This document shows, piece after piece, positions 805 through 64,000 of a DNA stretch of 64,000 bases. The notes beneath the pieces are model-generated. The model searched no databases. It had not been told where the DNA came from and saw only the letters and a program-made list of their open reading frames with translations. The stretch's first letter is position 1. Every line of letters begins with the position of its first letter. This DNA comes from Phyllobates terribilis (lineage: Eukaryota), in NCBI RefSeq assembly GCF_046119375.1, contig NW_027362768.1, positions 164,548,001 to 164,612,000 on the forward strand, read 5' to 3'. A program made the translations under genes and the position numbers.

Positions 805-968
805 CTCTAGACTGAATACTCTGAGGATCAATCTGTAAATCACCCATGGTGTTCGGTGGGGTTGTGTTTTTCAGTTCTTCATACACTTTATCCACCATCT
901 CTCTGTGGGTCGGGGTTTCTGTCTCATTTGCAAATTCTACATTCATGGAGGGCACTAAGGAACCGCTC
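805..968 (-). CDS. SEA domain C-terminal exon, module A (164 bp; (M)SGSLVPSMNVEFANETETPTHREMVDKVYEELKNTTPPNTMGDLQIDPQSIQSR-G)
   Basis: Acceptor TTTTTCTGGATCCTTTCTGCAG| ends at 969 and donor |GTAAGT starts at 804 (minus strand). GS-hydrophobic motif and the terminal xIDPxSI motif are typical of SEA domains. A paralogous exon of identical length lies at 31710-31873. Confidence 0.85.
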
Positions 969-1148
969 CTGCAGAAAGGATCCAGAAAAATTAGGTTAGA
1001 AGTGTGGAGCATCCAGTGTATTGTGCACAACAGCAGAACGGGGGCTGTAGAAGAGGATTATTCCATGAGAAATTCTCTCCTACACCAAAACCTACATATT
1101 CTACATTGCAGACACTGCAGATTTGCACTTGCACATTTATGTCACTTA

Positions 1149-3467
1149 CTAGATGGTGGCCCGATTCAAACGCATCGGGTATTCTAGAATATGTATGCGG
1201 TACACCGGGCGCAATCAGCAAAGCGGTGCTTAAATTTGGCGCCAATCAGCGAACCGTGTTAGTGAGGACCGGAGAGCGCGTTTAAATTTGGCGCCAATAT
1301 CTCTGATTGGTCGCGGCCGGCGGGCGCGACCAATCAGCACAGCGGTGTTTCAATTTGGCGCCAATATCACTGATTGGTCGCGGCCGGCGGGCGTGACCAA
1401 TCAGCACAGCGGTGGTTAAATTTGGCGCCAATATCGCTGATTGGTCGCGGCCGGCGGGCGCGACCAATCAGCACAGCGGTGTTTCAATTTGGCGCCAATA
1501 TCGCTGATTGGTCGCGGCCGGCGGGCGTGACCAATCAGCACAGCGGTGGTTAAATTTGGCGCCAATATCGCTGATTGGTCGCGGCCGGCGGGCGCGACCA
1601 ATCAGCACAGCGGTGGTTAAATTTGGCGTCAATATCGCTGATTGGTCGCGGCTGGCGGAGGCGACCAATCAGCACAGCTGTGTTTCAATTTGGCGCCAAT
1701 ATCACTGATTGGTCGCGGCCGGCGGGCGTGACCAATCAGCGCAGCGGTGGTTAAATTTGGCGCCAATATCGCTGATTGGTCGCGGCCGGCGGGCGCGACC
1801 AATCAGCACAGCGGTGTTTAAATTTGGCGCCAATATCGCTGATTGGTCGCGGCTGGCGGGCGCGACCAATCAGCACAGCGGTGGTTAAATTTGGCGCCAA
1901 TATCGCTGATTATTCGCGGCCAGCGGGCGCGACCAATCAGCACAGCGGTGTTTCAATTTGGCGCCAATATCACTGATTGGTCGCGGCCGGCGGGCGTGAC
2001 CAATCAGCACAGCGGTGGTTAAATTTGGCGCCAATATCGCTGATTGGTCGCGGCCGGCGGGCGCGACCAATCAGCACAGCGGTGTTTCAATTTGGCGTCA
2101 ATATCGCTGATTGGTCGCGGCTGGCGGAGGCGACCAATCAGCACAGCTGTGTTTCAATTTGGCGCCAATATCACTGATTGGTCGCGGCCGGCGGGCGTGA
2201 CCAATCAGCGCAGCGGTGGTTAAATTTGGCGCCAATATCGCTGATTGGTCGCGGCCGGCGGGCGCGACCAATCAGCACAGCAGTGTTTAAATTTGGCGCC
2301 AATATCGTTGATTGGTCGCGGCCGGCGGGCACGACCAATCACCACAGCGGTGTTTAAATTTGGCGCCAATATCGCTGATTGGTCGCGGCCGCCGGGCGCG
2401 ACCAATCAGCACAGCGGTGTTTAAATTTGGCGCCAATATCGCTGATTGGTCGCGGCTGGCGGGCGCGACCAATCAGCACAGCGGTGGTTAAATTTGGCGC
2501 CAATATCGCTGATTATTCGCGGCCAGCGGGCGCGACCAATCAGCACAGCGGTGTTTCAATTTGGCGCCAATATCACTGATTGGTCGCGGCCGGCGGGCGT
2601 GACCAATCAGCACAGCGGTGGTTAAATTTGGCGCCAATATCGCTGATTGGTCGCGGCCGGCGGGCGCGACCAATCAGCACAGCGGTGTTTCAATTTGGCG
2701 TCAATATCGCTGATTGGTCGCGGCTGGCGGAGGCGACCAATCAGCACAGCTGTGTTTCAATTTGGCGCCAATATCACTGATTGGTCGCGGCCGGCGGGCG
2801 TGACCAATCAGCGCAGCGGTGGTTAAATTTGGCGCCAATATCGCTGATTGGTCGCGGCCGGCGGGCGCGACCAATCAGCACAGCAGTGTTTAAATTTGGC
2901 GCCAATATCGTTGATTGGTCGCGGCCGGCGGGCACGACCAATCACCACAGCGGTGTTTAAATTTGGCGCCAATATCGCTGATTGGTCGCGGCCGCCGGGC
3001 GCGACCAATCAGCACAGCGGTGTTTAAATTTGGTGCCAATATCGCTGATTGGTCGCGGCCGGCGGGCGCGACCAATCAGCACAGCGGTGTTTAAATTTGG
3101 CGCCAATATCGCTGATTGGTCGCGGCTGGCGGGCGCGACCAATCAGCACAGCAGTGTTTAAATTTGGCGCCAATATCGCTGATTGGTCGCGGCTGTCGGC
3201 CGCGACCAATCAGCGAATTGTATTAGTGAGGACCGGGGAGCGGCGCTGCGGGAGATGACCGGCTGCTCGCAGCAGAAATATCCCGACCGGCGGTGCCGCT
3301 CCCCGGTCCTCCCTTCACACTTGCTGCTGATCTCTCGACGGTAGCCGCATGGAGGTCAGCGGCGCCGCCGGTCGGGGTACTTCGGCTGCATCGCCGCTGA
3401 CCTCTGTGCAGAGCGGTGTTTAAAGTTGGCGCCAATATTGCGGGATAAGACAATTATATACATTAGA
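1149..3467 (-). mobile_element. Non-autonomous Helitron (2319 bp) containing a 67-bp satellite
   Basis: On the minus strand it starts TC (3467-3466) and ends CTAG (1152-1149), with a subterminal hairpin CCCGAT/ATCGGG (1160-1179). Inserted between A and T with no TSD. The paralogous intron shows the empty site GTCACTTA|TTTAGAAATAAG at about 32046-32065. Confidence 0.9.
1284..3214. repeat. 67-bp GC/CpG-rich tandem repeat, about 29 units, each with an internal hairpin
   Basis: Unit AAATTTGGCGCCAATATCGCTGATTGGTCGCGGCCGGCGGGCGCGACCAATCAGCACAGCGGTGTTT. ORF-track offsets of 67, 134 and 603 bp confirm the period. Confidence 0.97.
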
Positions 3468-4023
3468 TTTAGAAATAAGTGTGTTTCTTTATATCCTTCT
3501 TATACCAGTCATCCTCACACCCTTCACCCTCCCATGAAATAGACATTTTCCTGTAACTATTCCTATAATTTTACTGTAGAGATGCAGTCTGCTTTACCTG
3601 AGGACAAGGAGTTGCAGCCATAGTCAGACTTTTTGGTGGCTATTGATGGGAATTTTGACCACCTGGTCATTTACCTATATACAAATATATGTTAAATCTT
3701 ACTTTCCTCCATATGGTACGACTGTATGATTCAATGGGAGCTACAGAAACAGCTAAGGGAAAGTGCCCATTGGTTTATTTAATAGTCTGCATTTATATGA
3801 AGCCGCAGCACACGCTCAACCTCCGCTCATTATAAACCGGCTCTCCTGACCCGAGCGTGACAGCACAATATTTCTACGCTCGAATCAGGAGAGCCGCCGG
3901 CCAGTCCGAGGATTGCGGTGCGATCGTCATCCGTGTTATACGGCTGTCTGACTGCGCCAAAATCAGGAGTGGAATAATCAGAGAAAAAGTATAATAAAAA
4001 CACGTCACCACTTCTGCATTTTT

Positions 4024-5783
4024 GAGGGAACCAGGAAAATGCAGCTGAGCAAATCTTCTAAAATCAATTAAATTTATTAGGTCATGAAAATTTAGTAAAA
4101 CACCTTAGGAAGAAATCAGCAAACGCGTTTCGAACTATGAGTTCTTAATCATTGCATGGAAAGAAACCGCAAGGAAATGGCATTATATGTCATATCCTGC
4201 TGATCACATGTTGAAAGGTAAGCCAATCAAAATTAAACAGACATAATGAATAAAAACATATAACATGATAAAATACTTGAATCCCTGTAGTATCCCAGCA
4301 GGGAAAGGATTATAATACAGGAGATAGTAAATGGATAAATGAAGTTATTTAAATTGTATCCACTAATATATGTGGAGGAACAGGATGGGGGAAAGAAGTT
4401 CTCATTCATAATGATACATCAGGTCATGTCTGTTGTTCATGCCGGCCGGTGCGCGTGTGTTCAATGTATAAATCCACCAACTTTCTCTATTAAGGAGCTT
4501 TCTCCTATGATCGCCACCCCTATGTGGTCTTATGACTCTCTCAATACCAATTACACTAAAGACTGTGGTGTCCCCATTATGACACATAGAAAAATGTCTT
4601 GATGCCGCAGAACATTTTGTAGTCAATTTATTATGGGCGTCTGACAGGTGGCGTCTGATACGTTTTTTTAAAGGATTGCAAGTGCATCCCACATATTGAA
4701 GATGGCATGTATTGCATGAAATAATATATATAACGTAGGTGGAGTTGCAATTAATACATTTTTTATATTATATTTTGCATTAGTAGAAAAAGATATGAAG
4801 GTTTTAGTACTAGTTATGTGAGTGCAGCACGTACAAATGGAATGTCCACACTTATAAAAACCGGTTGTGTGTAGCCAGGTAGTTGGACTAGATTGAGTTT
4901 CATTCAAATATAGACTCGGAGATAATAGATCACCCAAAGTGGGTGCTCTGCGGGCTGTGAATCTAACAGGTGTTGAAAGCGCTTCCCTTAATTTAGGATC
5001 CGCATATAGCATGGGTAAGTATTTACTTATTATATTTTTTATTGAAGAAAATTGAGGGCTATATTGAGAAACAAATGTAACATGATCAGACATTTTAGTT
5101 ATGATTTTAGGTTTTGTTCTAATCACATCCCACCTGTCTTTTTTGGTTACAATATGATGTGCTCTATTTAGCATCCAGTCAGGATATTGTTTTGCTGATA
5201 GTCTATTCATAACTTTGTTTGCCTCTGTCTTATATTGTTGTGCGTTACTCGTATTTCTTTTGGTGCGTATTAATTCACCTACCGGTATATTTGTAATAGT
5301 TTTTTTGTTATGACAAGAAGAAGCCAATAAGATGGAATTCCTAGATAGACTCTTTCTATAAGGTGTAATGGCCAGGTAACATCTAAAAAATCAATAGATT
5401 TATGTTGTAAATTATGAGTAAAAGTGAGATTCATGGAATTGTCCGCAATGAATTTGAGAAAGTCCTCTGCTTCTGTCCTTGTCCCATCCCATATCAGGAG
5501 TAGATCGTCTATATAGCGGCCATACCAACTGATATGGGAGGAGAAAGGACTAGAATCCAAAAAAATGAAATGTTCTTCCCAAAAAGCCATGAATATGTTG
5601 GCTATGGATGGCGAGAAACCTGCCCCCATCGATGCTCCACATTTCTGCAGAAAAAATTTGCCATTGAAAGAAAAATAATTGTGGCTAACTAAGAACTCCA
5701 CTGATAGTACTAAAAATTGTTTTAAGTCCTCATTATAAACACTGTATGCATTAAGGTGATATGAAAATTTTTTCTCTTTTGCG
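4024..5783 (-). mobile_element. 5'-truncated, frameshifted Penelope-like retroelement (RT + Cys motif + GIY-YIG endonuclease)
   Basis: RT fragment with HNYFSFNGKFFLQ..G.SMG..FSPSIAN and RYIDDL (5279-5800); linker RRAPTL.D.L and GFYKCGHSICTCC (4668-5327); GIY-YIG C-terminus PLKKRIRRH..ESWWIYTLNT..P.GMN (4402-4692). Three different frames, so it is inactive. The Cys cluster before the endonuclease suggests the Neptune clade. Confidence 0.9.
4118..4155 (-). ncRNA. Minimal type-I hammerhead ribozyme-like motif at the PLE 3' end
   Basis: Minus strand: GCA ATGATTA A GAACT-CAT-AGTTC GAAA CGCG TT TGC. Stem II GAACT/AGTTC, stem I GCA/UGC, palindromic CGCG stem III. The core is A3..U8 instead of C3..G8. 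Confidence 0.55.
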
Positions 5784-6119
5784 ACTTCTGCATTTTTCAC
5801 CCACCCATCATTTTGGCTTACAAATACTGATGTAAAATATTGACCAAATACTGAACGTGTGAACGTGGCCTTAGACTACTTTCCCACGATGAGCTTTTGA
5901 TGAGTTTTTGATGCTGCAGAATTTCTGAACCATTTCTGCACGTATTTAAATTAGGCTACTTGCAGTTTTTCATTGTATTTTTGTATGCGTTTTATAAACT
6001 TGCATTTTTATCTCGTTTTTGAGGCTGCGTTTTTGTTGCGTTTTTGATGTGTTGTGCTTTAAGTAAAGCTGTTTTTGATGCTTCCTGGCATGAAGATATT
6101 CAAGGTAATCCCCTGTCGA

Positions 6120-7378
6120 TCACTGTAGACTGCCAGGCAGGTTTTACAGAGCTTTACATATGTAAATCCGACACCACTGCTGCTCAAGCAGAGGGGAGGG
6201 GGCTAAGAGACACAGTGAGTGACAAAAGCCCCCACCAACAGCAGCTGTGAAGCTGCTGCATGCAGGCCATTCCCCCAAGCCATGTGCTCTTTGTGTAAAA
6301 TACGATAATTCAACAGCGAATTATGGGAAGACGATATATCTCAGTGATAAATCAACCAGATCTTTGGAAACCTAAGATAACGTCACCCTAGCTTTAAACA
6401 CAGTCCAGCGTGCCTGGATGGAGAGATACCCAGCACAGCCTTGCAGGGGCCCCTAGGACCCCAGTGTTAGGTATCCACGTGTAGCAGGGGCCTGGCTGGA
6501 TCCGATGACATCAGAACCAGCTTCCTAGCATCGTCCAGTAAGGAGGTATAGCCCATCTTTGTTTTTGGGAATCTGTAGCTGGGAGAGAACAGGGGTGGAG
6601 ACTTGGGCTCAAGCAGGGGGTGGAAGTGGGAGTGACCCAGAGAGTTTATCAGTCCCTGCTGGCCGAGCCCAGTGTCTTTTCCTGGGCATCAAGTCATGTG
6701 GGGAAAGTCCTGCAACAACAAAGAGAAGGCCTGCACACCTCCCATGTGGCAGCCCTTCCCCGACAGCCATATCTTCCATACAACCGATAACTGACTCTTA
6801 ATAACTGTTTTACATCTTTCGTACCCATGTTTTTGTGTTTGTAACTCTGACCACTGTGTATGTATAACCCTTATGTATATAGTGTATTGTTTAGTGTGCC
6901 CTTATGGCGATTAAATGTATAATTTAACCTTTGGCTGTTTTTTTATCTCAATCCACGAACCTTACGCCTGTTGTTCGGTCCAACGAAACACGCTACCGGG
7001 CTGGTTTCTAGCCCGATATAAGTCTGCTATATCAAATAAAAACTGGTGGCAGCTCTCCCAGTCCGACCAGGCTTTGATTCACTGGATCTAGTGAACGAAG
7101 CCTCTCCGCCTCAGTCAGGGTTGTGGGCACGTGTGCTGCCACGTCAGTGACTGAGTGGGCCTCCTCTCCCCACTCCCTGGTGCCTTCCTGTACCCATGTG
7201 GACAGGGGGTGTCTGTGCATAACTGTACCAATCTGACCTTACGCATCCCTCAGGGGGGTGTGGAATGTCACATTGGTTCAAAGGGCTGATCCGTACCACG
7301 TGCTACATCTGACGTAATTGTGACATCAGGTGGGTGGCGGGGTGTGGATCCATCACAAGTGGTGTCAACAGCGAGATC
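6120..7378 (+). mobile_element. Probable Gypsy-type LTR remnant with adjacent PBS-like sequence
   Basis: Ends ...CATCACA (7357), followed by AG and TGGTGTCA.. (7360-7378), resembling a degenerate tRNA-Leu primer-binding site. No gag/pol follows and the segment is absent from the paralogous intron. The left boundary is uncertain. Confidence 0.4.
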
Positions 7379-7853
7379 CTGCGGGGTCTCCCTGTTGCCA
7401 TTTCTTTTCTTCACACCTGGTATTTGGCTTTGACAAAACTTTATTGATATATACTTAGGTGCGCATTACATGTGTTTTTGATGTGTTTGTCACAGAAACA
7501 CATCAAAGACGCATGTGCGTTTTTTACCTGTGGATTTTACTAATTTAATTCAAATCTATGGGGAAAATCCGCACAGAAAACTCAGTGTATATTCTGCAGA
7601 TGTGAAACACACCACAGGTCAGGTTACGCTGAGTACAAAAAAGCACATTGGGAATGAGATTTCTATAAATCCCATCCACTTTGCTGAAACTGTAAGACGC
7701 TGTGTTTTTGATACAACAAAAATACACACAGTCAAAAACACACCAAGAGCCCATCATGGGAACATAAAATTCCGTTCCTCTATATGGCATGACTATATGA
7801 TTCAATTAGAATTACAGGAACAAGCAAGGGAAAGTGTCTAGTGATTTATTTAA

Positions 7854-8271
7854 AGCACCACTCCTGCGTTTTTTTAATTTCACCACTGGAGTGGTGCTTT
7901 AGATGTAAGTCCCCTGCCCCCTGTCTCATATTTACCTGCCGCCGTCTTCATCCTTTTCCAGCGTTGCTCTCGTCGGTCTCTGGCCAAAAGTGCTGGTAGC
8001 TCCTGTGTTTCATGGATAGGCGCGGAGGTCACGTTTCAATACCAGTCTATGTGGACCTCGTTCTGGCTCTCATAGATTTGCATTGAAGTCTTGTGTTGTA
8101 ACTCTTCTGACTTCTGGCCAGTCAGAGGTTACAGGCACAAGATGGCGCCGGACCGGAGGGCTGTCATTAAAAGGTGAAGCCGCCAGAAGATGAATATAAG
8201 AACGGGTGCAGGGGGCTTACATTTAAGGATCCACTCCAGTGCAGAAAAACAAAACCCGCTGGAGTGGTGCT
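7854..8271. mobile_element. Kolobok/T2-type MITE
   Basis: TIR AGCACCACTCC / GGAGTGGTGCT flanked by TTAA (7850-7853) and TTAT (8272-8275). Homologous uninterrupted sequence TTATTTAATAGTCTGCA is seen near 3775 and 32360. Confidence 0.7.
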
Positions 8272-8918
8272 TTATTAGTCTGCAGCTATATGAAGCCGCA
8301 GAACACGCTCAACTACCGCTCATTATAACTTCTGAATGTTGTGCTGTGATTGAAGAAAAGGGGACAAAGGGCCCTACATTATTCATCATGGGGGTCACAA
8401 CATTTTAATATTAATCACCAGTAATCTGACGTCTGACTCAGTATCTGTCTTGGATAAAGAAAAGTCTTAGGGGCCGATTCATCTGGCTTTTGCACCTTTT
8501 TTCTAGTATAAAAATTGTTCTAAGAGCGACTCTGTGTTTGCACTCTATTCATTATTTCATTTGCACATTTTTTCAGTTTACTTGTTTGTTTTGTTTTTTT
8601 TTGTTTTTCTTTCAGCATTTTCAAGGTGGTTTTTAGTCATCATTTTTTACTTTTTAAAATGTCACAATTTTTTGAGCAATTGTACCCCAGTACCTTATAA
8701 AATCTGTCAAATAATTTTGCATAGTTGAAGAATAACATGTGACATTTTAAAACTCATTGGAGATTGTGTCTCATTTTACTCTAAATAGGTGTAAAAAAAG
8801 CCCAAAAAAGAAACATCTTTGAATTTGCACTAATTTATCAAACTTTGTGAGTCCATTTTTATGAATTTTGAGCAAAATTGTAACAAATTCTTCACACTTA
8901 TATATAATAATCACTTAC

Positions 8919-8980
8919 ATGAATTCTATGTCTCTTATTGTTTTAACCGCCCACCAAATTATCCTTAAAATTTTCAGCAC
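8919..8980 (-). CDS. SEA domain middle micro-exon, module A (62 bp; VLKILRIIWWAVKTIRDIEF-M)
   Basis: Strong acceptor CCCTTTTCTCCTTTCATCTCTCTCTACAG| (AG at 8982-8981) and donor |GTAAGT at 8918. Phase 0 in and phase 2 out, exactly bridging the flanking exons. The paralog is 59 bp (frame preserved). Confidence 0.8.
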
Positions 8981-9312
8981 CTGTAGAGAGAGATGAAAGG
9001 AGAAAAGGGTGAGAGCTCCAGTAATGACAGTGGTAATACCCTCATCATCCGATGTTGTAGCTTCTAGTCTGGTCTGCTGCAGTCTACACTCCTAGATTTG
9101 ACCGACGCAGCAGATGATGAACATGTAATTAAAGGAAGAGGAAATGGTGCAAAATGTGTCCCAAATCTACTACATCTGTTCTGATCAGTCGTAGATTTCA
9201 TTATTATAACTGTCAAAAAGATAAAAATGCAAAACATTACTGATATCGTAGGAACCTTTTAATGAGTTAATTTCACCTCCTTTCTTAGACTGGTTTTAAA
9301 ACAACACTATTA

Positions 9313-9738
9313 GACCTGATTCCGACATCCATATAATCAGTCTGAGTGCCAGCAGTGCTTTGCATTTGATTTTCATCAGAGTTTGGCCTTTGTGTCAGAA
9401 TTTATCAGTTATTTTCAAGCCGCAAGTAGAAAAAAAAAAGATTACAAAGCTTCTCCTATCTATTACAATGTTAATCATGGGCAGCACACGGGCAGCCCAC
9501 ACTGATGCCATCCAAGTGCTGTCCGTAATTTTCACTGACCAAAGACTTGTATCTGTAATTTTGATCTGTAGCTCAGATAAAAAATTAACATGTCCCAGGG
9601 ATTTTTGTGCAGACACAAACTCGACAAAAAACGGACATGTGAATAAGCACCATAGACTTTAATAAGCACCGTATATGTTTTATCTTTGAAAATCACGGAT
9701 GGAATATGTGCAAAACTCTCGGACATCTGAATGAGGCC
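9313..9738. mobile_element. PIF/Harbinger-type MITE, shared with the paralogous intron
   Basis: TTA-GACCTGATTCCGACATCC ... GGACATCTGAATGAGGCC-TTA (imperfect TIR, TTA TSD). Present at the same position in module B, so it predates the duplication. Confidence 0.65.
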
Positions 9739-9933
9739 TTAATGCATGTGGTTTACAGGAATCCATTAAATTAGATGAAACCTCCCACAGTGGAGAGGAT
9801 CAGATGAGAGAATAAATCTTCCATATCTCTGCCTGGTAGTACATGGTACAACATCAGCGTCTTATGAAATACATATAGAATGCATCCTAACAATGTTTAA
9901 AAAGAGTATGGAGATTAATACATTGTTACTTAC

Positions 9934-12900
9934 ATTCTCTTGTACTTCAGTGGACCTTGTTCTATAGTCTGCAGACGATGTGTCCTTGAGACTGTCCGTA
10001 TATGATCTGTTTATAATCCTGAATTTTAATGGAACTACATTTCTAGCAGTTGTGGTTGTCTTTGGACTAATAGTTGTTGCAGGCTCAGTGGCGGTACTTG
10101 GAGCCTGTGTGGGAGTTGGAGGCTCAGTGGCCGTGGTTGATGGAGACTCAGTGGCGGTACTTGGAGCCTGTGTGGGAGTTGGAGGCTCAGTGGCCGTGGT
10201 TGATGGAGACTCAGTGGCGGTACTTGGAGCCTCTGTGGAAGTTGGACGCTCAGTGGCCTTGGTTGTTGGAGACTCAGTGGCGGTACTTGGAGCCTGTGTG
10301 GGAGTTGGAGGCTCATTGGATGTGGTTGTTGGAGACTCAGTGGTGGTATTTCGAGCCTGTGTGGGAGTTGAAGGCCCAGTGGCCATGGTTATTGGAGACT
10401 CAGTGACGGTATTTGGAGCCTGTGTGGGAGTTGGAGGCTCAGTGGCGCTGGTTGTTGGAGACTCAGTGGCGGTACTTGAAGCCTGTGTAGAAGTTGAAGG
10501 CTCAGTGGCCGTGGTTGTTGGAGAATCAGTGGTGGTACTGGGAGCCTGTGTGGGAGTTGGAGGCTCAGTAGCCGAGGTTGTTGGAGCCTGTGTGGGAGTT
10601 GAAGGATCAGTGGCCTTGGTTGTTAGAGACTCAGTGGCGGGACTTGAAGCCTGTGTGGGAGTTGGAGGCTCAGAGGCCATGGTTGTTGGAGACTCAGTGG
10701 CGGTACTTGGAGCCTGTGTGGGAGTTGGAGGCTCAGTGGCCGTGGTTGTTAAAGCCTGTGAGGGAGTTGGAGGCTCAGTGGCCGTGGTTGTTGTAGACTC
10801 AGTGGCAGTATTTGGAGCCTGTGTAGGAGTTGGAGGCACATTGGATGTGGTTGACGGAGACTCAGTGGTGGAACTTGGAGCCTGTGTGGGAGTTGGAGGC
10901 CCAGTGGCCGTGGTTGTTGGAGACTCAGTGGTGGTACTTCGAGCCTGTGTGGGAGTTGAAGGCCCAGTGGCCATGGTTATTGGAGACTCAGTGACGGTAT
11001 TTGGGGCCTGTGTCGGAGTTGGAGGCTCAGTGGCCATGGTTGTTGGAGACTCAGTGGCGGTACTTGGAGCCTGTGTGGGAGTTGGAGGCTCAGTGGCCTT
11101 GGTTGTTGGAGTCTGTGTGGGAGTTGGAGGTTGAGTGGCTGTGGTTGTTTGAGACTCAGTGGTGGTACTTGGAGCCTGTGTGGGAGTAGTAAGCTCAGTG
11201 GCCGTGGATTTTGGGGACTCAGTGGTGGTACTTGGAGCCTGTGTGGGAGTTGGAGGATCAGTGGCCATGGTTGTTGTAGACTCAGTGGCAGTACTTTGAG
11301 CCTGGGTGGGAGTTGGAGGCTCAGTGGCTGTGGTTGTTGGAGCCTGTGTGGGAGTTGGAGGTTCAGTGGCCGTGGTTGTTGGAGCCTGTGTGGGAGTTGG
11401 AGGTTCAGTGGCCGTGGTTGTTGGAGCCTGTGTGGGAGTTGGAGGTTCAGTGGCCGTGGTTGTTGGAGCCTGTGTGGGAGTTGGAGGCTCAGTGGCTGTG
11501 GTTGTTGGAGACTCAGTAGCGGTACTTGGAGCCTGTGTGGGAGTTGGAGGCTCAGTGGCTGTGGTTGTTGGAGACTCAGTGGCGGTACTTGGAGCCTGTG
11601 TGGGAGTTGGAGGCTCAGTGGCCGTGGTTGTTGGAGTCTGTTTGGGAGTTGGAGGCTGAGTGGCTGTGGTTGATGGAAACTCAGTGGCGGTACTTGCAGC
11701 CTGTGTGGAAGTTGGAGGCTCAGTGGCTGTGATTGTTGGAGACTCAGTGGGGGTACTTGGAGCCTGTGTTGGAGTTGGAGGATCAGTGGCCGTGGTTGTT
11801 GGAGACTCAGTAGCGGTACTTGGAGCCTGTGTGGGAGTTGGAGGCTCAGTGGCCGTGGTTGTTGGAGCCTCTGTGGTAGTTGGAGGCTCAGTGGCCTTGG
11901 TTGCTGGAGACTCAGTGGCGTTACTTGGAGCCTGTGTGGGAGTTGGAGGCTCAGAGGCCATGGTTGTTGGAGACTCAGTGGTGGTACTTGGAGCCTTTGT
12001 GCAAGTTGGAAGCTCAGTGGCTGTGGTTGTTAAAGCCTGTGTGGGAGTTGGAGGCTCAGTGGTCGTGGTTATTTGAGACTCAGTGGTGGTACTTGGAGCC
12101 TGTGTAGGAGTTGGAGGCTCAGTGGCCATGGTTGATAGAGACTCAGAGGCGGTACTTGGAGCCTCTGTGGGAGTTGGAGGCCCAGTGGCCGTGGTTATTG
12201 GAGACTCAGTGGCGGTCCTTGGAGCCTGTGTGGTAGTTGGAGGCCCAGTGGCCGTGGTTGTTGGAGACTCAGTGGCGGTACTTGGAGCCTGTGTGGGAGT
12301 TGGAGGCTCAGTGGCCGTGGTTGTTGGAGCCTGTGTGGGAGTTGGAGGCTCAGGGGCCTTGGTTGTTAGAGACTCAGTGGCGGTACTTGAAGCCTGTGTG
12401 GAAGTTGAAGTCTCAGTGGCCATGGTTGTTGGAGAATCAGTGGTGGTACTTGGAGCCTGTGTGGGAGTTGGAGGCTCAGTAGCCGTGGTTATAGGAGACT
12501 CAGTGGCGCTCCTTGGAGCCTGTGTGGAAGTTGAAGTCTCAGTGGCCATGGTTGTTGGAAAATCAGTGGTGGTATTTGGAGCCTGTGTGGGAGTTGGAGG
12601 CTCAGTAGCCATGGTTGTTGGAGCCTGTGTGGGAGTTGAAGGCTCACTGGCCTTGGTTGTTAGAGACTCAGTGGCGGGACTTGAAGCCTGTGTGGGAGTT
12701 GGAGGCTCAGAGGCCGTGGTTGTTGAAGACTCAGTGGCGGTACTTGGAGCCTGTGTGGGAGTTGGAGGCTCAGTGGCCATGGTTGTTGGAGACTCAGTGG
12801 CAGTATTTGGAGCCTGTGTATGAGTTGGAGGCTCATTGGATGTGGTTGATGGAGACTCAGTGGTGGAACTTGGAGACTGTGTGGGAGTTGGAGGCCCAGA

Positions 12901-24900: not shown

Positions 24901-25847
24901 TGTTGGAGACTCAGTAGCAGTACTTGGAGCCTGTGTGGGAGTTGCAGGCTCAGTGGCTGTGGTTGTTGGAGACTCAGTGGCGGTACTTGGAGCCGGTGTG
25001 GGAGTTGGAGGCTCAGTGGCCGTGGTTTTTGGAGACTCAGTGGCGGTACTTGGAGCCTGTGTGGGAGTTGGGAGCTCAGTGGCCATGGTTGTTGGAGCCT
25101 GTGTGGGAGCTGGAGGTTGAGTGGCCATGGTTGATGGAGACTCAGTGGTGGTACTTGGAGCCTGTGTGGGAGTTGAAGGCTCAGTGACCGTGGTTGTTGG
25201 AGGCTCAGTGGCCGTGGTTGTTGGAGGCTCAGTGGCCGTACTTGGAGCCTGTGTAGGAGTTGGAGGCTCAGTGTCCATGGTTGATGGAGACTCAGTGGCG
25301 GTACTTGGAGCCTGTGTGGAAGTTGGAGGCTCAGTGGCCATGATTGTTGGAGACTCAGTGGCAGTACTCGGTGCCTGTGTGGAAGTTGGAGGCTCAGTGG
25401 GCATTGTTGTTGGAGCCTGTGTGGGAGTTGGAGGCTCAGTGGCCGTGGTTGTTGGAGACTCAGTGGCGGTACTTGGTGCCTGTGTGGGAGTTGGAGGCTC
25501 AGTGGCCGTGGTTGTTAGTGACTCAATGGCGGTACTTGGAGCCTGTGTGGGAGATGGAGGCTCAGTGGCCGTGGTTGTTGGAGACTCAGTGGCGGTACTT
25601 GGAGCCTGTGTGGAAGTTGGAGGGTCAGTGGTCTTGGTTGATGGAGACTCAGTGGCGGTACTTGGAGACTGTGTGGGAGTTGAAGCCTGTGTGGGAGTTG
25701 GAGCCTGTGTGGGAGTTGGAGCCTCTGTGCGAGTTGGAGCCTCTGTGCGAGTTGGAGCCTCTGTGCGAGTTGGAGCTGGTCCTGTGTTGGTTGATAATAC
25801 AGTAGTGGTTTGTTCTGTGTTCGGTTCCATAGTGGGTATTGTTGCTT
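9934..25847 (-). CDS. Giant PTS exon A (15,914 bp, about 5,300 aa), 63/39-bp repeats TATEPPTPTQAPSTATESPTT, ending in SEA N-terminus NVVPLKFRIINRSYTDSLKDTSSADYRTRSTEVQEN
   Basis: Uninterrupted 5322-codon ORF; acceptor TTATTCTATTTATGCAG| (AG at 25849-25848, phase 1); donor AAT|GTAAGT at 9933 (phase 0). The SEA start pattern F.I.N..Y...L.D..S..Y is typical. Confidence 0.92.
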
Positions 25848-35990: not shown

Positions 35991-36099
35991 TCCGGGAGGA
36001 TCAGGCTCGAGTGGTCCTCATAGCCCCCTTCTGGATTTTTCCAGAGATTCCCGACCTTCTTGCTCAAGGTACTATATTCCATCCTCAGGTGAAAGGATT

Positions 36100-54600: not shown

Positions 54601-57600
54601 ACGGAGGAAGAGAGGGGGTGGCCTCTTCGAGGGTGGAAAGAGGTGCCACAGGGGTGGTCTCTGCGGGGGTGGACAGAAGCGCAGCAGGGGTGGACGGAGG
54701 CGCAGCGGGTGTGGTCTCTGTGGCAGTGGACGGAGGCGCAGCGGGGGTGGTCTCTGTGGGGGTGGCCGTAGGCGCTGCCGGGGTGGTCTCTGTGGGGGTG
54801 GACGGAGGAAGAGAGGGGGTGGCCTCTTCGAGGGTGGACAGAGGTGCCACAGGGGTGGTCTCTGTGGGGGTGGACGGAGGCGCAGCGGAGGTGATCTCTG
54901 CGGGTGTGGACGAAGGGGCACCGGGGGTGGTCTCTGCGGGTGTGGACGGAGGCGCAGCGGGGGTGGTCTCTGCAGGGGTGGACAGAGGCACAGCCGGCGT
55001 GGACGGAGGCGTAGCGGGTGTGGTCTCTGTGGCAGTGGACGGAGGCGCAGCGGGGGTGGTCTCTGTGAGGGTGGACGGAGGCGCCGCGGGGGTGGTCTCT
55101 GCTGGGGTGGTCCCTGCGGGGGTGGCCGGAGGCGCAGCCGGGGTGGTCTCTGCGGGGGTGGACAGAGGAAGAGAGGGGGTGGCCTCTTCGAGGGTGGAAA
55201 AAGGCGCAGCGGCGGTGGTCTCTGCGGGGGTGGACGGAGGCGCAGTGGGGGTGGTCTCTGTTAGGGTGGACGGAGGCGCAGCGGGGGTGGTCTCTGCTGG
55301 GGTGGTCTCTGCGGGGGTGGATGGAGGCGCCACGGGGGTGGTTTCTTCGGGGGTGGAAAGAGGCGCTGAGGGGGTGGTCTCTGCGGTGGTGGACGAAGGA
55401 GCATCGGGAGTGGTCTCTGCGGGGGTGGACGGAGGCGCAGCGGAGGTGGTCTCTGTGGGGGTGGACGGAGGCGCAGTGGGGGTGGTCTTTGCGGGGGTGG
55501 TCTCTGCGGGGGTGGACGGAGGCGCAGTGGGGATGGTCTCTGCGGGGGTGGACGGAGGCGCAGCGGGGGTGGTCTCTGCGGGGGTGGACAGAGGCGCAGC
55601 CGGCGTGGACGGAGGCGCAGTGGGGGTGGTCTCTGCGGGGGTGGTCTCTGCGGGGGTGGCCGGAGGCGCAGCCGGGGTGATCTCTGCGGGGGTGGATGGA
55701 GGAAGAGAGGGGGTGGCCTCTTCGAGGGTGGAAAGAGGCGCAGCGGGGGTGGTCTCTACGGGGGTGGTCTCTGCGGGGGTGGCCGGAGGCGCAGCCGGGG
55801 TGGTCTCTGCGGGGGTGGACTGAGGAAGAGAGCGGGTGGCCTCTTCGAGGGTGGAAAGAGGCGCAGTGGGGGTGGTCTCTGCGGGGGTGGACGGAGGCGC
55901 AGTGGGGGTGGTCTCTGCGAGGGTGGACGGAGGCACAGCGGGGGTGGTCTCTGCTGGGGTGGTCTCTGCGGGGGTGGATGGAGGCACCGCGGGGGTGATT
56001 TCTTCGAGGTTGGAAAGAGGCGCTGCGGGGGTGGTCTCTGCGGTGGTGGACGAAGGCGCATCGGGAGCGGTCTCTGCGGGGGTGGACGGAGGCGCAGCGG
56101 GGGTGGTCTCTGTGGGGGTGGACGGTGGCGCAGTGGGGGTGGTCTCTGCGGGGGTGGACAGAGGTGTAGCGGGGGTGGTCTCTGCGGGGGTGGTTTCTGC
56201 GGGGGTGGAAGGAGGCGAAACCGGGGTGGTCTCTGCGGGGGTGGACGGAGGCGCAGCGGTGGTGGACTCTGCGGGGGTGGACGGAGGCGCAGCGGGGGTG
56301 GTCTTTGCGGGGGTGGTCTCTGCGGGGGTGGACGGAGGCGCAGTGGGAGTGGTCTCTGCGGGGGTGGACGGAGGCGCAGCGGGGGTGGTCTCTGCAGGGG
56401 TGGACAGAGGCACAGCCCGCGTGGACGGAGGCGCAGCGGGTGTGGTCTCTGTGGCAGTGGACGGAGGCGCAGTGGGGGTGGTCTCTGTGGGGGTGGCCGT
56501 AGGCGCTGCCGGGGTGGTCTCTGTGGGGGTGGACGGAGGAAGAGAGGGGGTGGCCTCTTCGAGGGTGGAAAGAGGTGCCACAGGGGTGGTCTCTGTGGGG
56601 GTGGACGGAGGCGCAGCGGGGGTGATCTCTGCGGGTGTGGACGAAGGCGCACCGGGGGTGGTCTCTGCGGGTGTGGACGGAGGCGCAGCGGGGGTGGTCT
56701 CTGCGGGGGTGGACAGAGGCACAGCCGGCGTGGACGGAGGCGTAGCGGGTGTGGTCTCTGTGGCAGTGGACGGAGGCGCAGCGGGGGTGGTCTCTGTGAG
56801 GGTGGACAGAGGCGCATCGGGAGTGGTCTCTGCGGGGGTGGACGGAGGAGCAGCGGAGGTGGTCTCTGTGGGGGTGGACGAAGGCGCAGTGGGGGTGGTC
56901 TTTGTGGGGGTGGTCTCTGCGGGGGTGGACGGAGGCGCAGTGGGGGTGGTCTCTGCGGGGGTGATCTCTGCGGGGGTGGACGGAGGCGCAGCGGGGGTGG
57001 TCTCTGCGGGGGTGGACAGAGGCGCAGCCGGCGTGGACGGAGGCGCAGCGGGGGTGGTCTCTGCGGGGGTGGTGTCTGCGGGGGTGGCCGGAGGCGCAGC
57101 CGGGGTGGTCTCTGCGGGGGTGGATGGAGGAAGAGAGGGGGTGGCCTCTTCGAGGGTGGAAACAGGCGCAGCGGGGGTGGTCTCTGTGGGGGTGGACGGA
57201 GGCGCAGTGGGGGTGGTCTCTGTGAGGGTGGACGGAGGCGCAGTGGGGGTGGTCTCTGCTGTGGTGGTCTCTGCGGGGGTGGATGGAGGCGCCGCGGGGG
57301 TGGTTTCTTTGGGGGTGGAAAGAGGCGCTGAGGGGGTGGTCTCTGCGGTGGTGGACGAAGGTGCATCGGGAGTGGTCTCTGTGGGGGTGGACGGAGGCGC
57401 AGTGGGGGTGGTCTCTGTGGGGGTGGACGGAGGCGCAGCGGGGGTGGCCTTTGCGGGGGTGGTCTCTGCAGGGGTGGACGGTGGCGCAGTGGGGGTGGTC
57501 TCTGCAGGGGTGGACAGAGGTTCAGCGGGGGTGGTCTCTGCGCGGGTGGTTTCTGCGGGGGTGGACGGAGGCGCAGCCGGGGTGGTCTCTGCGGGGGTGG

Positions 57601-60600
57601 ACGGAGGCGCAGCGGTGTTGAACTCTGCGGGGTTGGACAGAGGCGCAGAGGGGGTGGTCTCTGTGGGGGTGGATGGAGGTGCAGCGGAGGTGGTCTCTTC
57701 GAGGGTGGAAAGAGGCGCTGCGGGGGTGGTCTCTGCGGTGGTGGACGAAGGCGCATCGGGAGTGGTCTCTGCGGGGGTGGACGGAGGCGCAGCGGATGTG
57801 GTCTCTGTGGGGGTGGACGGAGGCGCAGCGGGGGTGGTCTCTGCGGGGGTGGACAGAGGCGCAGCCGGCGTGGACGGAGGCGCAGCGGGTGTGGTCTCTG
57901 TGGCGGTGGATGGAGGCGGAGCGGGGGTGGTCTCTGCGGGGGTGGTCTTTGTGGGGGTGGCCGTAGGCGCTGCCGGGGTGGTCTCTGCAGCGGTGGATGG
58001 AGAAAGAGAGGGGGTGGCCTCTTCGAGGGTGGAAAGAGACGCTGCGGGGGTGGTCTCTGCGGTGCTGGACGAAGGCGCATTGTGAGTGTTCTCTGTGGGG
58101 GTGGACGGAGGTGCAGCGGAGGTGGTCTCGGTGGGGGTGGACGGAGGCGCCGCGGGGGTGGTCTCTGCGGGGGTGGACGGAGGCGCAGTGGGGGTGGTCT
58201 CTGCGGGGGTGATCTCTGCGGTGGTGGACGGAGGCGCAGCGGGGGTGGTCTCTGCGGGAGTGGACAGAGGCACAGCCGGCGTGGACGGAGGCGCAACGGG
58301 TGTGGTCTCTGTGGCGGTGGACGGAGGCGCAGCGGGGGTGGTCTCTGCGGGAGTGGCCGGAGGCGCAGCCGGGGTGGTCTCTGCGGGGGTGGACGGAGGC
58401 GCAGTGGGGGTGGTCTCTGCGGGGGTGATCTCTGCGGGGGTGGACGGAGGCGCAGCGGGGGTGGTCTCTGCGGGGGTGGACAGAGGCACAGCCGGCGTGG
58501 ACGGAGGCGCAACGGGTGTGGTCTCTGTGGCGGTGGACGGAGGCGCAGCGGGGGTGGTCTCTGCGGGAGTGGCCGGAGGCGCAGCCGGGGTGGTCTCTGC
58601 GGGGGTGGACTGAGGAAGAGAGCGGGTGGCCTCTTCGAGGGTGGAAAGAGGCGCAGTGGGGGTGGTCTCTGCGGGGGTGGACGGAGGCGCAGTGGGGGTG
58701 GTCTCTGCGAGGGTGGACGGAGGCACAGCGGGGGTGGTCTCTGCTGGGGTGGTCTCTGCGGGGGTGGATGGAGTCGCCGCGGGGGTGATTTCTTTTAGGG
58801 TGGAAAGAGGCGCTGCGGGGGTGGTCTCTGCGGTGTTGGACGAAGGCGCATCGGGAGTGGTCTCTGCGGGGGTGGACGGAGGCGCAGTGGGGGTGGTCTC
58901 TGTGGGGGAGGACGGAGGCGCAACGGGGGTGGTCTCTGTTGTGGGGGTGGACGGTGGCGCAGTGGGGGTGGTCTCTGCGGGGGTGGACAGAGGTGTAGCG
59001 GGGGTGGTCTCTGCGGGGGTGGTTTCTGCGGGGGTGGAAGGAGGCGCAACCGGGGTGGTCTCTGCGGGGGTGGACGGAGGCGCAGCGGTGGTGGATTCTG
59101 CGGGGGTGGACGGAGGCGCAGCGGGGGTGGACTTTGCGGGGGTGGTCTCTGCGGGGGTGGACGGAGGCGAAGTGGGAGTGGTCTCTGCGGGGGTGATCTC
59201 TGCGGGGGTGGACGGAGGCGCGGCCGGGGTGGTCACTGTGGGGGTGGACGGAGGCGCAGCGGGGGTGGTCTCTGCGGGGGTGGACGGAGGCGCAGCGGGG
59301 GTGGTCTCTGCGGGGGTGGACAGAGGCGTTGCCGGGGTGGACGGAGGAGCAGCTTGTGTGGTCTCTGCGGCGGTGGACGGAGGTGCAGCGGGGGTGGTTT
59401 CTGCGGGGGCCGTCTCTGCCGGGGTGGAGGGAGGCGCCGCGGGGGTGGTCTCTGCGGGGGTGGTCTCTGCGGGGGTGGACGGAGGCACAGCCGGGGTGGT
59501 CTCTGCGGGGGTGTACCGAGGCGCAGCGGGGGTGGTCTCTTTGAGGGTGGAAAGAGGCGCAGCGGGGGTGGTCTCTGCGGGGGTGGATGGAGGCGCAGTG
59601 GGGGTGGTCTCTGCGGGGGTGGACAGAGGTACAGCGGGGGTGGTCTCTGCGGGGGTGGTTTCTGCGGGGGTGGACGGAGGCGCAGCGGTGGGGGACTCTG
59701 CGGGGGTGGACGGAGGCGCCGCGGGGGTGGTCTCTGCGGGGGTGGATGGATGTGCAGCGGAGGTGGTCTCTTCGAGGGTGGAAAGAGGCGCTGCGGGGGT
59801 GGTCTCTGCGGTGGTGGACAAAGGCGCATCGGGAATGGTCTCTGCGGGGGTGTACGGAGGAGCAGCGGAGGTGATCTCTGTGGGGGAGGACGGAGGCGCC
59901 GCGGTGGTGGTCTTTGCGGGGGTGGACGGAGGCGCAGTGGGGGTGGTCTCTGCGGCGGTGGTCTCTGCAGGGGTGGACGGAGGCGCAGTGGGGGTGGTCT
60001 CTGCGGGGGTGGACAGAGGTGCAGCAGGGGTGGACGGAGGCGCAGTGGGTGTGGTCTCTGTGGCGGTGGACGGAGGCTCAGCGGGGGTGGTCTCTGCGGG
60101 GGTGGACGGAGGCGCGGCCGGGGTGGTCTCTGCGGGGGTGGTCTCTGCGGGGGTGGCCATAGGCGCTGCCGGGGTGGTCTCTGCGGGGGTGGACGGAGGA
60201 AGAGAGGGGGTGGCCTCTTCGAGGGTGGAAAGAGACGCCGCGGGGGTGGTCTCTGCGGGGGTGGACGGAGGCGCAGCGGGGGTGGTCTCTGCGGGTGTGG
60301 ATGGAGGCGCAGAGGGGGTGGTCTCTGCGGGTGTGGACGGAGGCGCAGCGGGTGTGGTCTCTGCGGGGGTAGACAGAGGCACAGCCCGCGTGGACGGAGG
60401 CGCAGCGGGTGTGGTCTCTGTGGCAGTGGACGGAGGCGCAGCGGGGGTGGTCTCTGCGGGGGTGTTCTCTGCGGGGGTGGACAGAGGCGCAGCCGGCGTG
60501 GACGGAGGCGCAGCGGGTGTGGTCTCTGTGGCAGTGGACGGAGGTGCAGCCGGGGTGGTCTCTGCGGGGGTGGACGGAGAAAGAGAGGGGGTGGCCTCTT

Positions 60601-63600
60601 CGAGGGTGGAAAGAGGCGCAGCGGGGGTGGTCTCTGCGGGGGTGGATGGAGGCGCAGCGGGTGTGGCCTCTGTGGCGGTGGACGGAGGCGCAGCGGGTGT
60701 GGTCTCTGTGGCAGTGGAGGGAGGCGCAGCGGGGGTGGTCTCTGCATGGGTGTTGTCTGCGGGGGTGGACGGAGGCGCAGCCGGGGTGGTCTCTGTGGGG
60801 GTGAACGGAGGCGCAGTGGGGGTGGTCTCTGCGAGGGTGGACGGAGGCACAGCGGGGGTGGTCTCTGCTGGGGTGGTCTCTGCGGGGGTGGATGGAAGAG
60901 CAGTGGAGGTGGTCTCTTTGAGGGTGGAAAGAGGTGCTGCGGGGGTGGTCTCTGCGGTGGTCGACGAAGGTGCATCGGGAGTGGTCTCTGCGGGGGTGGA
61001 CGGAGGCGCAGCGGAGGTGGTCTCTGTGAGGGTGGATGGATGCGCAGCGGGGGTTGTCTTTGCGGGGGTGGTATCTGCGGGGGTGGATGGAGGCGCAGTG
61101 GGGGTGGTCTCTGCGGGAGTGATCTGTGCGGGGGTGGACGGAGGCGCAGTGGAAGTGGTCTCTGTGGGGGTGGACAGAGGCGCAGCGGGGGTGGTCTTTG
61201 TGGGGGTGGTCTCTGCGGGGGTCGATGGAGGCGCAGTGGGGGTGGTCTCTGCGGGGGTGATTTCTGCGGGGGTGGACGAATGCGCAGCGGGGGTGGTCTC
61301 TGCGGGGGTGGACAGAGGCACAGCCGGCGTGGACGGAGGCGCAGCGGGTGTGGTCTCTGTGGCGGTGGACGGAGGCGCAGCGGGTGTGGTCTCTGTGGCA
61401 GTGGACGGAGGCGCAGCGGGGGTGGTCTCTGCCGGGGTGTTTTCTGCGGGGGTGGCCGGAGGCGCAGCCGGGGTGGTCTCTGTGGGGGTGGACGGAGGAA
61501 GAGAGGGGGTGGCCTCTTCGAGGGTGGAAAGAGGCGCTGCGGGGGTGGTCTCTGCGGGGGTGGACGGAGGCGCAGTGGGGGTGGTCTCTGCGAGGGTGGA
61601 CGGAGGAGCAGCGGGGGTGGTCTCTGCTGGGATGGTCTCTGCGTGGGTGGATGGAGGAGCAGTGGAGGTGGTCTCTTCGAGGGTGGAAAGAGGCGCTGCG
61701 GGGGTGGTCTCTGCGGTGGTCGACGAAGGCGCATCGGGAGTGGTCTCTGCGGGGGTGGACGGAGGCGCAGCGGAGGTGGTCTCTGTGGGGGTGGACGGAG
61801 GCGCAGCAGGGGTTGTCTTTGCGGGGGTGGTCTCTGCGGGTGTGGATGGAGGCGCAGTGGGGGTGGTCTCTGCGGGGGTGATCTCTGCGAGGGTGGACGG
61901 AGGCGCAGCGGGGGTGGTCTCTGCGGGGGTGGACAGAGGCGCAGCCAGCGTGGACGGAGGCGCAGCGGGTGTGGTCTCTGTGGCGGTGGACGGAGGCGCA
62001 GCGGGGGTGGTCTCTGCGGGGGTTGACGGAGGAAGAGAGGGGGTGGCCTCTTCGAGGGTGGAAAGAGGCGCAGTGGGGGTGGACAGATGCACAGTGGGGG
62101 TGGTCTCTGCGAGGGTGGACGGAGGCGCAGCGGGGGTTGTCTCTGCTGGGGTGGTCTCTGCGGGGGTGGATGGAGGTGCCGCAGGGGTGGTTTCTTCGAG
62201 GGTGGACAGAGGCGCAGCAGGGGTGGACGGAGGCGCAGCGGGTGTGGTCTCTGTGGCGGTGGACGGAGGCACTGCGAAGGTGGTCTCTGCGGGGGTGGAC
62301 GGAGGTGCGGCCGGGGTGGTCACTGTGGGGGTGGACGGAGGCGCTGCGGGGGTGGTCTCTGCGGGTGTGGACAGAGGCGCAGCGGGGGTGGTCTCTGCAG
62401 GCGTGGACAGAGGTGCAGCCGCCGTGGACAGAGGCGCAGAGGGGGTGGTCTCTGCGGGGGTGGCCGGACGCGCAGCCGGGGTGGTCTCTGCAGGGGTGGA
62501 CGGAGGAAGAGAGGGGGTGACCTCTTCGAGGGTGGAAAGAGGCGCAGCGGGGGTGGTCTCTGTGGGGGTGGACGGAGGCGCAGCGGGGGTGGTCTCTGCG
62601 GGTGTGGACGGAGGCGCAGCGGGGGTGGTCTCTGCGGGGGTGGACAGAGGCGCAGCCGGCGTGGACGGAGGCGCAGCGGGTGTGGTCTCTGTGGCGGTGG
62701 ATGGAGGCGGAGCGGGGGTGGAATCTGCGGGGGTGGTCTCTGCGGGGGTGGCCGGAGGCGCAGGGGGTGTGGTCTCTGTGGCGGTGGATGGAGGCGGAGC
62801 GGGGGTGGAATCTGCGGGGGTGGTCTCTGCAGGGGTGGACGGAGAAAGAGAGGGGGTGGCCTCTTTGAGGGTGGAAAGAGGAGCTGCGGGGGTGTTCTCT
62901 GCGGTGGTGGATGAAGGCGCATTGGGAGTGGTCTCTGCGGGGGTGGACGGAGGCGCAGCGGAGGTGGTCTCTGTGGGGGTTGACGGAGGCACAGCGGGGG
63001 TGGTCTTTGCGGGGGTGGTCTCTGCAGGAGTGGACAGAGGCGCAGTGGGGGTGGTCTCTGCGGGGGTGATCTCTACGGGGGTGGATGGAGGCACGGCCGG
63101 GGTGGTCACTGTGGGGGTGGACGGAGGCGCAGCGGGGGTGGTCACTGTGGGGGTGGACGGAGGCGCAGCGGGGGTGGTCTCTGCAGGGGTGGACGGAGGC
63201 GCAGTGGGGGTGGTCTCTGCGGGGGTGGACAGAGGCGTAGCCGGGTTGGACGGAGGCGCAGCGGGTGTGGTCTCTGCGGCGGTGGACGGAGGCGCAGCGG
63301 GGGTGGTCTCTGCGGGGGTGGTCTCTGCGGGGGTGGCCGGAGGCGCAGCCGGGGTGGTCTCTGCGGGGGTGGACGGAGGAAGAGAGGGGGTGGCCTCTTC
63401 GAGGGAGGAAAGAGGCACAGCGGGGGTGGTCTCTGCGGGGGTGGACGGAGGCGCCGCAAGGGTGGTCTCTGCAGGGGTGGTCTCTGCGGGGGTGGTCGGA
63501 GGCACAGCCGGGGTGGTCTCTGCGGGGGTATACGGAGGCGCAGCGGGGGTGGTCTCTTCGAGGGTGGAAAGAGGCGCAGCGGGGGTGGTCTCTGCGGGGG

Positions 63601-64000
63601 TTGACGGAGGTGCAGTGGGGGTGGTCCCTGCAGGGGTGGACAGAGGTGCAGCGGGGGTGGTTTCTGCGGGGGTGGACGGAGGCACAGCCGGAGTGGTCTC
63701 TGCAGGGGTAGACGGAGGCGCAGCGGTGGTGGACTCTGCGGGGGTGGACGGAGGCGCAGCGGGGGTGGTCTCTGCGGGGGTGGATGGAGGCGCAGCGGAG
63801 GTGGTCTCTTCGAGGGTGGAAAGAGGCGCTGCGGGGATGGTCTCTGCGGTGGTGGACGAAGGCGCATCGGGAGTGGTCTCTGCGGGGGTGGACGGAGGCG
63901 CAGCGGAGGTGGTCTCTGTGGGGGTGGACGGAGGCGCAGCGGGGGTGGTCTTTGCGGGGGTGGTCTCTGCTGGGGTGGAAGGAGGCGCAGTAGGGGTGGT
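39602..64000 (-). CDS. Giant PTS exon B (at least 24,399 bp, 5' end outside window), 36/21/15-bp repeats PAETTPAAPPST, ending in SEA N-terminus NVVPLKFKIINRSYTESLRDTSSADYRRQSTEIVNI
   Basis: 8094-codon ORF. I translated 63686-64000 and the frame stays open to the window edge. Donor ATA|GTAAGT at 39601 (phase 0). Confidence 0.92.

Follow-up and report, generated by a model that had tools for sequence, protein, structure and literature searches.

An internal part of a very large poison-frog mucin gene, very probably built from repeated three-exon PTS-SEA units

The stretch of Phyllobates terribilis DNA analyzed here comprises 64,000 nucleotides of contig NW_027362768.1 (positions 164,548,001 to 164,612,000; hereafter the window, in whose own coordinates all positions are given). 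We consider it very probable that this window is an internal part of one very large poison-frog mucin gene built from repeated three-exon units, in which a giant exon encoding proline/threonine/serine-rich (PTS) repeats is followed by two small exons that are predicted to complete a SEA domain. A single giant, duplicated modular mucin is favored because the exon-wise SEA matches, the homology between the introns of two units, and the RNA contigs that join 31710 to 25847 all point to it.

The window contains two strand-skewed stretches, i.e., 9.9-25.8 kb with 56% GC and 39.4-64 kb with 72% GC, which coincide with two enormous open frames of the (-) strand and with tandem arrays of 63-nt and 36-nt units, respectively. 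On this strand there are two collinear cassettes, A and B, in each of which a giant PTS exon precedes two short exons of 59/62 nt and 164 nt. The splice sites are GT..AG throughout, and the entry and the exit of each cassette are in phase 1. A previous sequence-only reading of the window had already proposed this shared layout with phase 1 at both ends, and its coordinates for the exons of both cassettes all hold; its estimate of more than 13,500 codons agrees with the 13,587 codons (40,762 nt) that we counted in the window. The features are the following:

39602..64000, (-): PTS exon of cassette A, partial, since it runs off the right window edge; donor ATA followed by gtaagt, phase 0; at least 8,133 codons, 72% GC.
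38641..39601, (-): intron 1 of cassette A (gtaagt..aaag), homologous to 8981-9933.
38582..38640, (-): second exon of A, of 59 nt, entered in phase 0 and left in phase 2; its peptide, VMLFLGRIFIVRSISIKEF, is predicted to form the middle of the SEA domain.
31874..38581, (-): intron 2 of cassette A, 6.7 kb, containing an opposite-strand DIRS-like retroelement at 33680-36864.
31710..31873, (-): third exon of A, of 164 nt, entered in phase 2 and left in phase 1; it begins S-G-S-L-V and is predicted to encode the C-terminal half of the SEA domain.
25848..31709, (-): third intron of A (5,862 nt), connecting the two cassettes and removed in RNA.
9934..25847, (-): giant PTS exon of B, starting in phase 1, with 15,914 nt, 5,304 full codons, and 56% GC.
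13000..16565, (-): in-frame tandem duplication in array B, with a unit of 1,785 bp (595 codons).
8981..9933, (-): intron 1 of cassette B.
8919..8980, (-): second exon of B, of 62 nt, entered in phase 0 and left in phase 2, with the peptide VLKILRIIWWAVKTIRDIEF.
969..8918, (-): intron 2 of cassette B, 7.9 kb, with a 2,319-bp insertion (1149-3467) and, at about 4668-5800, reverse-transcriptase fragments.
805..968, (-): third exon of B, of 164 nt, entered in phase 2 and left in phase 1, with 90.9% nucleotide identity to its counterpart in A.
1..804, (-): first part of intron 3 of cassette B, homologous to the equivalent segment in A.

The coding frame does not contain a single stop in either giant exon (0 in 8,133 codons of A and 0 in 5,304 codons of B), whereas the five other frames hold 13-89 stops over A and 33-439 over B, suggesting that the open frame has been maintained and is not a by-product of the repeats. 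The translated arrays consist of Pro/Thr/Ser/Ala/Glu repeats, and these three first residues account for 64% of array A and 67% of array B. Both frames leave the repeats through the segment ...NVVPLKF(K/R)IINRSYT(E/D)SL(R/K)DTSSADYR..., which is followed by a gtaagt donor in phase 0. The micro-exon, i.e., exon 2, lies about 960 nt downstream of the PTS exon in both cassettes, between an ag acceptor and a gtaagt donor, and its frame survives a 3-nt length difference between A and B. An alternative acceptor located 15 nt inside exon 2 of cassette A (ttatttttag before GG) was rejected because its use leads to a stop in exon 3. The PTS exon of cassette B begins at 25847, in phase 1, behind the acceptor tctatttatgcag; the codon split over the junction between exon 3 of A and this exon is GAA, and the frame then continues straight into the open reading frame (ORF) of 5,304 codons. 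Since every unit enters and leaves in phase 1, the units can be spliced head to tail in one reading frame, and since cassette B amounts to 16,140 nt (3 x 5,380), its addition or skipping leaves the frame unbroken. An Rfam scan and a tRNA scan of the window yielded no matches.

The SEA searches were run exon by exon, taking the tails of the PTS exons as 50 residues. Both tails match positions 3-35 of the 106 positions of the Pfam SEA domain (PF01390), with E-values of 2e-4 for B and 6e-4 for A (21.6 and 20.3 bits); these scores lie under the cut-off of 26.4 bits, as expected when only one third of the domain is present. The tail also gave a weak match to residues 10-38 of the SEA structure 2e7v (E 0.23). 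The last 35 codons of each PTS exon encode the N-terminal third of a SEA domain. The most useful reference for the rest of the module was a Xiphophorus protein annotated as "mucin-5AC-like" (P0003; 1,855 aa), which carries 12 Pfam SEA domains with short PTS stretches between them. Exon 3 (SGSLVSSMDVEF...) aligns with the GSV(I/V).. C-terminal half in 12/12 of these Pfam-confirmed domains. In a profile made of the 12 domains (111 positions), the exon 1 tails fall at positions 7-39 and exon 3 at 62-98 (62-97 for exon 3 of cassette B), and the gap of 22 profile positions between them fits the 19-20 codons of exon 2. A direct BLASTP comparison of the tail of exon 1 with P0003 found no match, although the profile of the domains of the same protein places this tail. 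Taking together the Pfam match of the PTS tails, the exon 3 alignments, and the profile positions separated by a gap of the size of exon 2, the three exons are predicted to encode one collinear SEA-type module, whose exon 2/3 boundary would fall just before the G-S motif.

This motif reads G-S-L-V-S in cassette A and G-S-L-V-P in cassette B, the canonical form being GSVVV. The Gly-Ser pair is kept at the place where the SEA domains of membrane mucins self-cleave, and the residues that follow (LVS and LVP) are non-canonical. From this motif, the SEA modules may self-cleave into links held together non-covalently. The SEA exons of both cassettes lack Cys.

The non-repeat parts of the two cassettes were compared by blastn. 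The blocks found are collinear, with 85-92% identity, and extend over intron 1, the two ends of intron 2, and the first part of intron 3; they are interrupted by cassette-specific insertions. Taken over the whole comparison, the introns of A and B resemble each other by 83-99%. The paired blocks are the following:

38043-39700 versus 8339-10032: 85% identity.
31061-32053 versus 132-1148: 90% identity.
32053-32599 versus 3467-4011: 92% identity.
29565-29669 versus 22-128: 87% identity.

This intron homology, together with the exon-wise SEA matches, bears out the proposal that the whole unit, i.e., the PTS exon plus the three-exon SEA module, was duplicated with its introns. The homology to the left of exon 805-968, which had been said to continue up to the window edge, was also recovered (132-804 versus 31061-31709 and 22-128 versus 29565-29669) and reaches base 22. 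Cassette B thus continues into an intron of the type that connects A with a PTS exon, which suggests a further PTS exon beyond the left window edge.

The junction between the two cassettes was examined in RNA contigs of four runs (X1-X4) of one study, with a library type that is only guessed, mapped to the region 25785-31784. In X2, a joint from 25847 to 31710 with a depth of 389 skips 5,862 nt with CT..AC ends, i.e., GT..AG on the (-) strand, which coincides exactly with the predicted intron. A second joint, equally long but displaced by 2 nt (25849 to 31712), is present in 4/4 runs, at depths of 14-1,413. The shifted joint fits a contig that reads ...TCTAGAG before the junction and AAGCA after it, where exon 3 ends in AGAG as in cassette B, versus AGGG in A. 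It may derive from an allele of A or from the junction of another pair of cassettes at least 90% alike, and the anchors of the joint, of only 20-42 nt, are too short to tell one from the other. Under either origin, exon 3 is spliced to a PTS exon.

The depths at the two sides of the intron fall in step across the four runs (349/696, 418/722, 115/197, and 5/5). The edge of exon 3 of cassette A reaches 197-722 in X1-X3 and about 5 in X4, and considering both edges, the range in X1-X3 is 115-722. On the contrary, the depth is 0 across 1.2 kb of unique intron (26985-28184). In the segments 26385-26984 and 28185-29784 of the same intron, depths of thousands to tens of thousands were observed, made up of many short contigs 90-95% alike, a pattern indicative of dispersed repeats transcribed at other places in the genome and not of exons of the mucin gene. 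Since the exon edges are deep and co-vary over the runs, the unique intron has depth 0, and the high depth is restricted to repeat-like intron, the contig data behave as RNA. The sequence-only reading had left open that transcripts end after 31710 and that a separate promoter or first exon makes the cassettes two genes; the contigs skip exactly 25848-31709 and join exon 3 of A to the PTS exon of B, and thus, cassettes A and B are not separate genes.

When exon 3 was compared with 1.84 billion representative proteins, four matches were found at E<=1e-3 (P0001-P0004), and its relatives come only from dendrobatoid frogs, plus one fish protein, which is the Xiphophorus protein mentioned above. The best match (P0001, XP_073501362.1) is from P. 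terribilis itself, with 98% identity over 47 residues, one residue off cassette A. This RefSeq model fuses a copy of exon 3 to a piggyBac-type transposase ORF located 45 kb away, and is probably a chimera created by the annotation across a masked PTS exon. The models P0002 and P0005 (KAM4023534.1 and KAM4023533.1), which belong to one cluster and come from Anomaloglossus baeobatrachus, show 57% identity and carry adjacent locus tags. Each of them reads exon 2, exon 3, the segment ...SIQSRG joined to ETIPTQ..., and then the start of a PTS array, so that they resemble two successive cassettes of a gene of this kind that the annotation has divided. These sequences suggest that the same tandem cassette gene occurs in Aromobatidae, split by annotation. 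P0004 is an unrelated repeat protein. Word-index protein searches with the SEA start encoded in exon 1, set within references of 5,304 aa and 1,000 aa and covering proteins of 2,917-9,282 aa and of 550-1,750 aa, returned 2-3 candidates, none of them scoring. Neither the exon 3 scan nor the word-index searches yielded any Xenopus protein, a result to be read with the little reach of a 54-aa query. In the protein collections searched there is no intact model of the gene, but only fragments or the chimera.

The two PTS arrays have very different compositions. Array A is made of about 670 copies of a unit of 36 nt/12 aa with the consensus PAETTPAAPPST, whereas array B contains about 250 copies of a unit of 63 nt/21 aa that reads about APSTATESPTTTATEPPTPTQ. 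Their chemistries also differ, the 12-mer being Pro/Ala-rich and the 21-mer Thr-rich. The arrays have 72% and 56% GC, respectively, and use different codons for the same amino acids, with a GC skew near +0.5 (plus strand) in both. Since the arrays are unlike in unit length, codon choice, and GC content, each of them has been built or rebuilt through its own amplification. In array B, the copies 13000-14780 and 14785-16565 are about 99% identical, and the pattern of the tandem repeats (TRF) and ORFs recurs with a shift of 1,785. Long near-identical segments are absent from array A, where the median best self-identity of 1-kb windows is 73%. The gene had been described as still evolving, and this applies to the inside of array B, where the 1,785-bp duplication is recent, but not to the cassettes as units, whose copies differ by about 10%.

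The introns also carry insertions and mobile elements. The 2,319-bp insertion at 1149-3467, in intron 2 of cassette B, contains a tandem array of 29 copies of a 67-bp unit (1280-3214), and it came after the cassette duplication, because the corresponding site is empty in cassette A, at 32053. Intron 2 of cassette A holds, antisense to the gene (33680-36864, (+)), two overlapping ORFs that contain a LAP2alpha-like domain (E 5e-13) and a reverse transcriptase, and that look like a DIRS-type retroelement. Reverse-transcriptase fragments were also detected in intron 2 of cassette B (5279-5800, (-)).

The divergence between A and B is distributed unevenly along the cassettes:

Exon 2: 35.6%.
150 nt of intron just upstream of exon 2 (38711-38860): 0.7%.
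Exon 3: 9.1%.
Intron flanking exon 3: 2-5%.

The SEA exons are thus more diverged between the cassettes than the adjoining intron. The SEA exons show a synonymous divergence of about 0.12, and the difference in most intron bins is 2-17%, so that the cassette duplication should be not very recent, or else partly homogenized. The dN/dS ratio between the SEA modules is about 0.8 (87 codons of exon 1 tail plus exon 3). The excess of exon over intron divergence fits either diversifying selection on the SEA modules or a homogenization limited to the introns.

This pattern is also what could be expected if the locus were a decaying, non-functional mucin relic, or if the arrays were partly an assembly artifact of a repeat-rich 12-Gb genome, the open frame not being translated as such. 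A dN/dS ratio of about 0.8, exons more divergent than the nearby intron, the lack of an intact database model, and introns full of mobile elements would all agree with it. Nevertheless, we regard this explanation as improbable, since a run of 13,437 PTS codons with 0 stops is very unlikely without selection when every other frame holds at least 13; taking the stop rate of the best other frame, the chance of finding no stop is about e^-13 for A and e^-33 for B. Moreover, the frame of exon 2 is intact through its 3-nt indel, eight of eight splice sites are intact over both cassettes, and the exon edges are expressed with depths in the hundreds in three runs.

A second explanation would be that there are two neighboring genes, each of them a mucin with a single PTS-SEA unit, whose cassettes are never joined in one mRNA. 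The annotations of related frogs do contain separate small genes, i.e., P0002 and P0005 with their adjacent locus tags, and P0001 starts in exon 3. However, this proposal is very hard to reconcile with the contigs of four runs that join 31710 to 25847 with GT..AG ends, with an exon 3 that ends in phase 1 without a stop codon, and with a PTS exon B that starts in phase 1 behind a good acceptor, lacking a start context and a signal peptide. Hence, we give it very little credit.

Some points nevertheless weigh against the interpretation of the window as part of one giant PTS-SEA mucin gene. The SEA assignment is assembled from separate exon matches; exon 3 alone has no sequence match in Pfam or the Protein Data Bank (PDB), and exon 2 by itself matches nothing. 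The RNA support consists of contigs from a single study with a guessed library type, it concerns one junction only (31710/25847), and the commoner joint is the one shifted by 2 nt, possibly derived from an allele or a different pair of cassettes. The lengths of the arrays hinge on the assembly being correct. Finally, the signal peptide and the C-terminus lie outside the window, and the glycosylation and secretion of the product are deduced from its predicted domains.

Taking the single-gene interpretation as a basis, a model for the structure and growth of the gene can be proposed. The giant exon, with thousands of Pro/Thr/Ser/Ala-rich repeats, would provide a scaffold for dense O-glycans, and its last 35 codons would begin the SEA domain, which the 59/62-nt micro-exon would continue and the 164-nt exon would complete from the G-S motif. 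Judging from this domain content, the product would be an extracellular mucin with heavy O-glycosylation, its glycan-bearing rods of thousands of residues being punctuated by folded SEA modules of about 110 residues, and more cassettes are expected on both sides of the window. The gene would have grown at two levels: firstly, by amplification of short units within each PTS exon, plus the recent 1,785-bp duplication in B; secondly, by duplication of the whole exon-intron cassette, presumably through unequal crossing-over within the gene.

The phase symmetry of the cassettes makes cassette skipping possible in principle. A bolder proposal, to which we assign only a small chance, is that the gene is a long train of differentiated cassettes, each with its own PTS chemistry and a fast-diverging SEA micro-exon flanked by nearly identical intron sequence, where the choice of cassettes would result in a programmable length and glycan scaffold and self-cleaving SEA modules would act as breakable joints connecting the glycan brushes. 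The hypervariable micro-exon and the possible cassette choice are the parts that could raise the significance of this gene. Aside from this, the window offers an exon-level view of mucin growth on two scales, short units inside exons and frame-neutral duplication of cassettes, in a gene of more than 13,500 codons that is missing from current frog annotations, where only fragments or a transposase chimera represent it. Its value lies in the annotation of genes of the amphibian mucosal and skin barriers and in the natural series of SEA modules that it provides, and it does not imply a new principle.

Concerning the known mucins, the size of the gene alone is not novel, since giant mucin exons and proteins have already been described in MUC16 and MUC12. 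Exon 3 of human MUC16, of more than 21 kb, is cited as the largest human internal exon, and several other exons exceed 10 kb (PMC3467050); MUC12 alleles encode up to 23,080 aa (PMC13345508). The PTS exon of cassette A, of at least 24.4 kb, exceeds exon 3 of human MUC16.

The window shares with MUC1, MUC3, MUC12, MUC13, and MUC17 a PTS repeat exon that runs directly into a SEA domain with a G-S-hydrophobic motif. In these mucins, however, a single SEA domain is followed by a membrane anchor, while here, according to the RNA, the SEA domain is followed by another PTS exon, and no hydrophobic segment was found after either SEA domain within the window. The likeness to MUC16 (CA125) is broader, as this is also a giant mucin with a very large PTS exon and many SEA modules derived from a repeated, frame-keeping multi-exon cassette. 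The SEA repeats of MUC16 are contiguous units of 156 aa, encoded by five exons and containing a conserved Cys pair. That our gene is the frog counterpart of MUC16, a membrane mucin, instead of a secreted mucin of the frog/fish PTS/SEA family, would be in line with its many SEA modules, with a PTS exon even larger than the human one, and with a C-terminus outside the window where a membrane anchor is possible, but it is the least credible of the explanations considered, given that the SEA module has three exons without Cys and lies thousands of PTS residues apart from the next one, versus the five-exon repeats of MUC16 placed back to back, and that no MUC16 appeared among the exon 3 matches in the 1.84 billion representatives.

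The closest resemblance is to mucin-like proteins in which PTS and SEA domains alternate, a type that reportedly occurs in fishes. The differences from the fish relative P0003 are mainly of size, with PTS blocks of 5,304 and at least 8,133 residues here and of tens of residues in P0003. In the frog Xenopus, mucin-like proteins with PTS domains alternating with SEA domains are mentioned in PMC4948705, where Lang 2007 is cited for them. The window presents the same order PTS-SEA-PTS-SEA in one frame, with the SEA exon of A and the PTS exon of B joined in RNA contigs; the host is likewise a frog, no VWD domain is visible in the window, and the PTS content of 64% and 67% is carried by repetitive units of 12 and 21 aa. 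In view of these features, the gene is best classified among the alternating PTS/SEA mucin-like proteins, as a new member of very large size.

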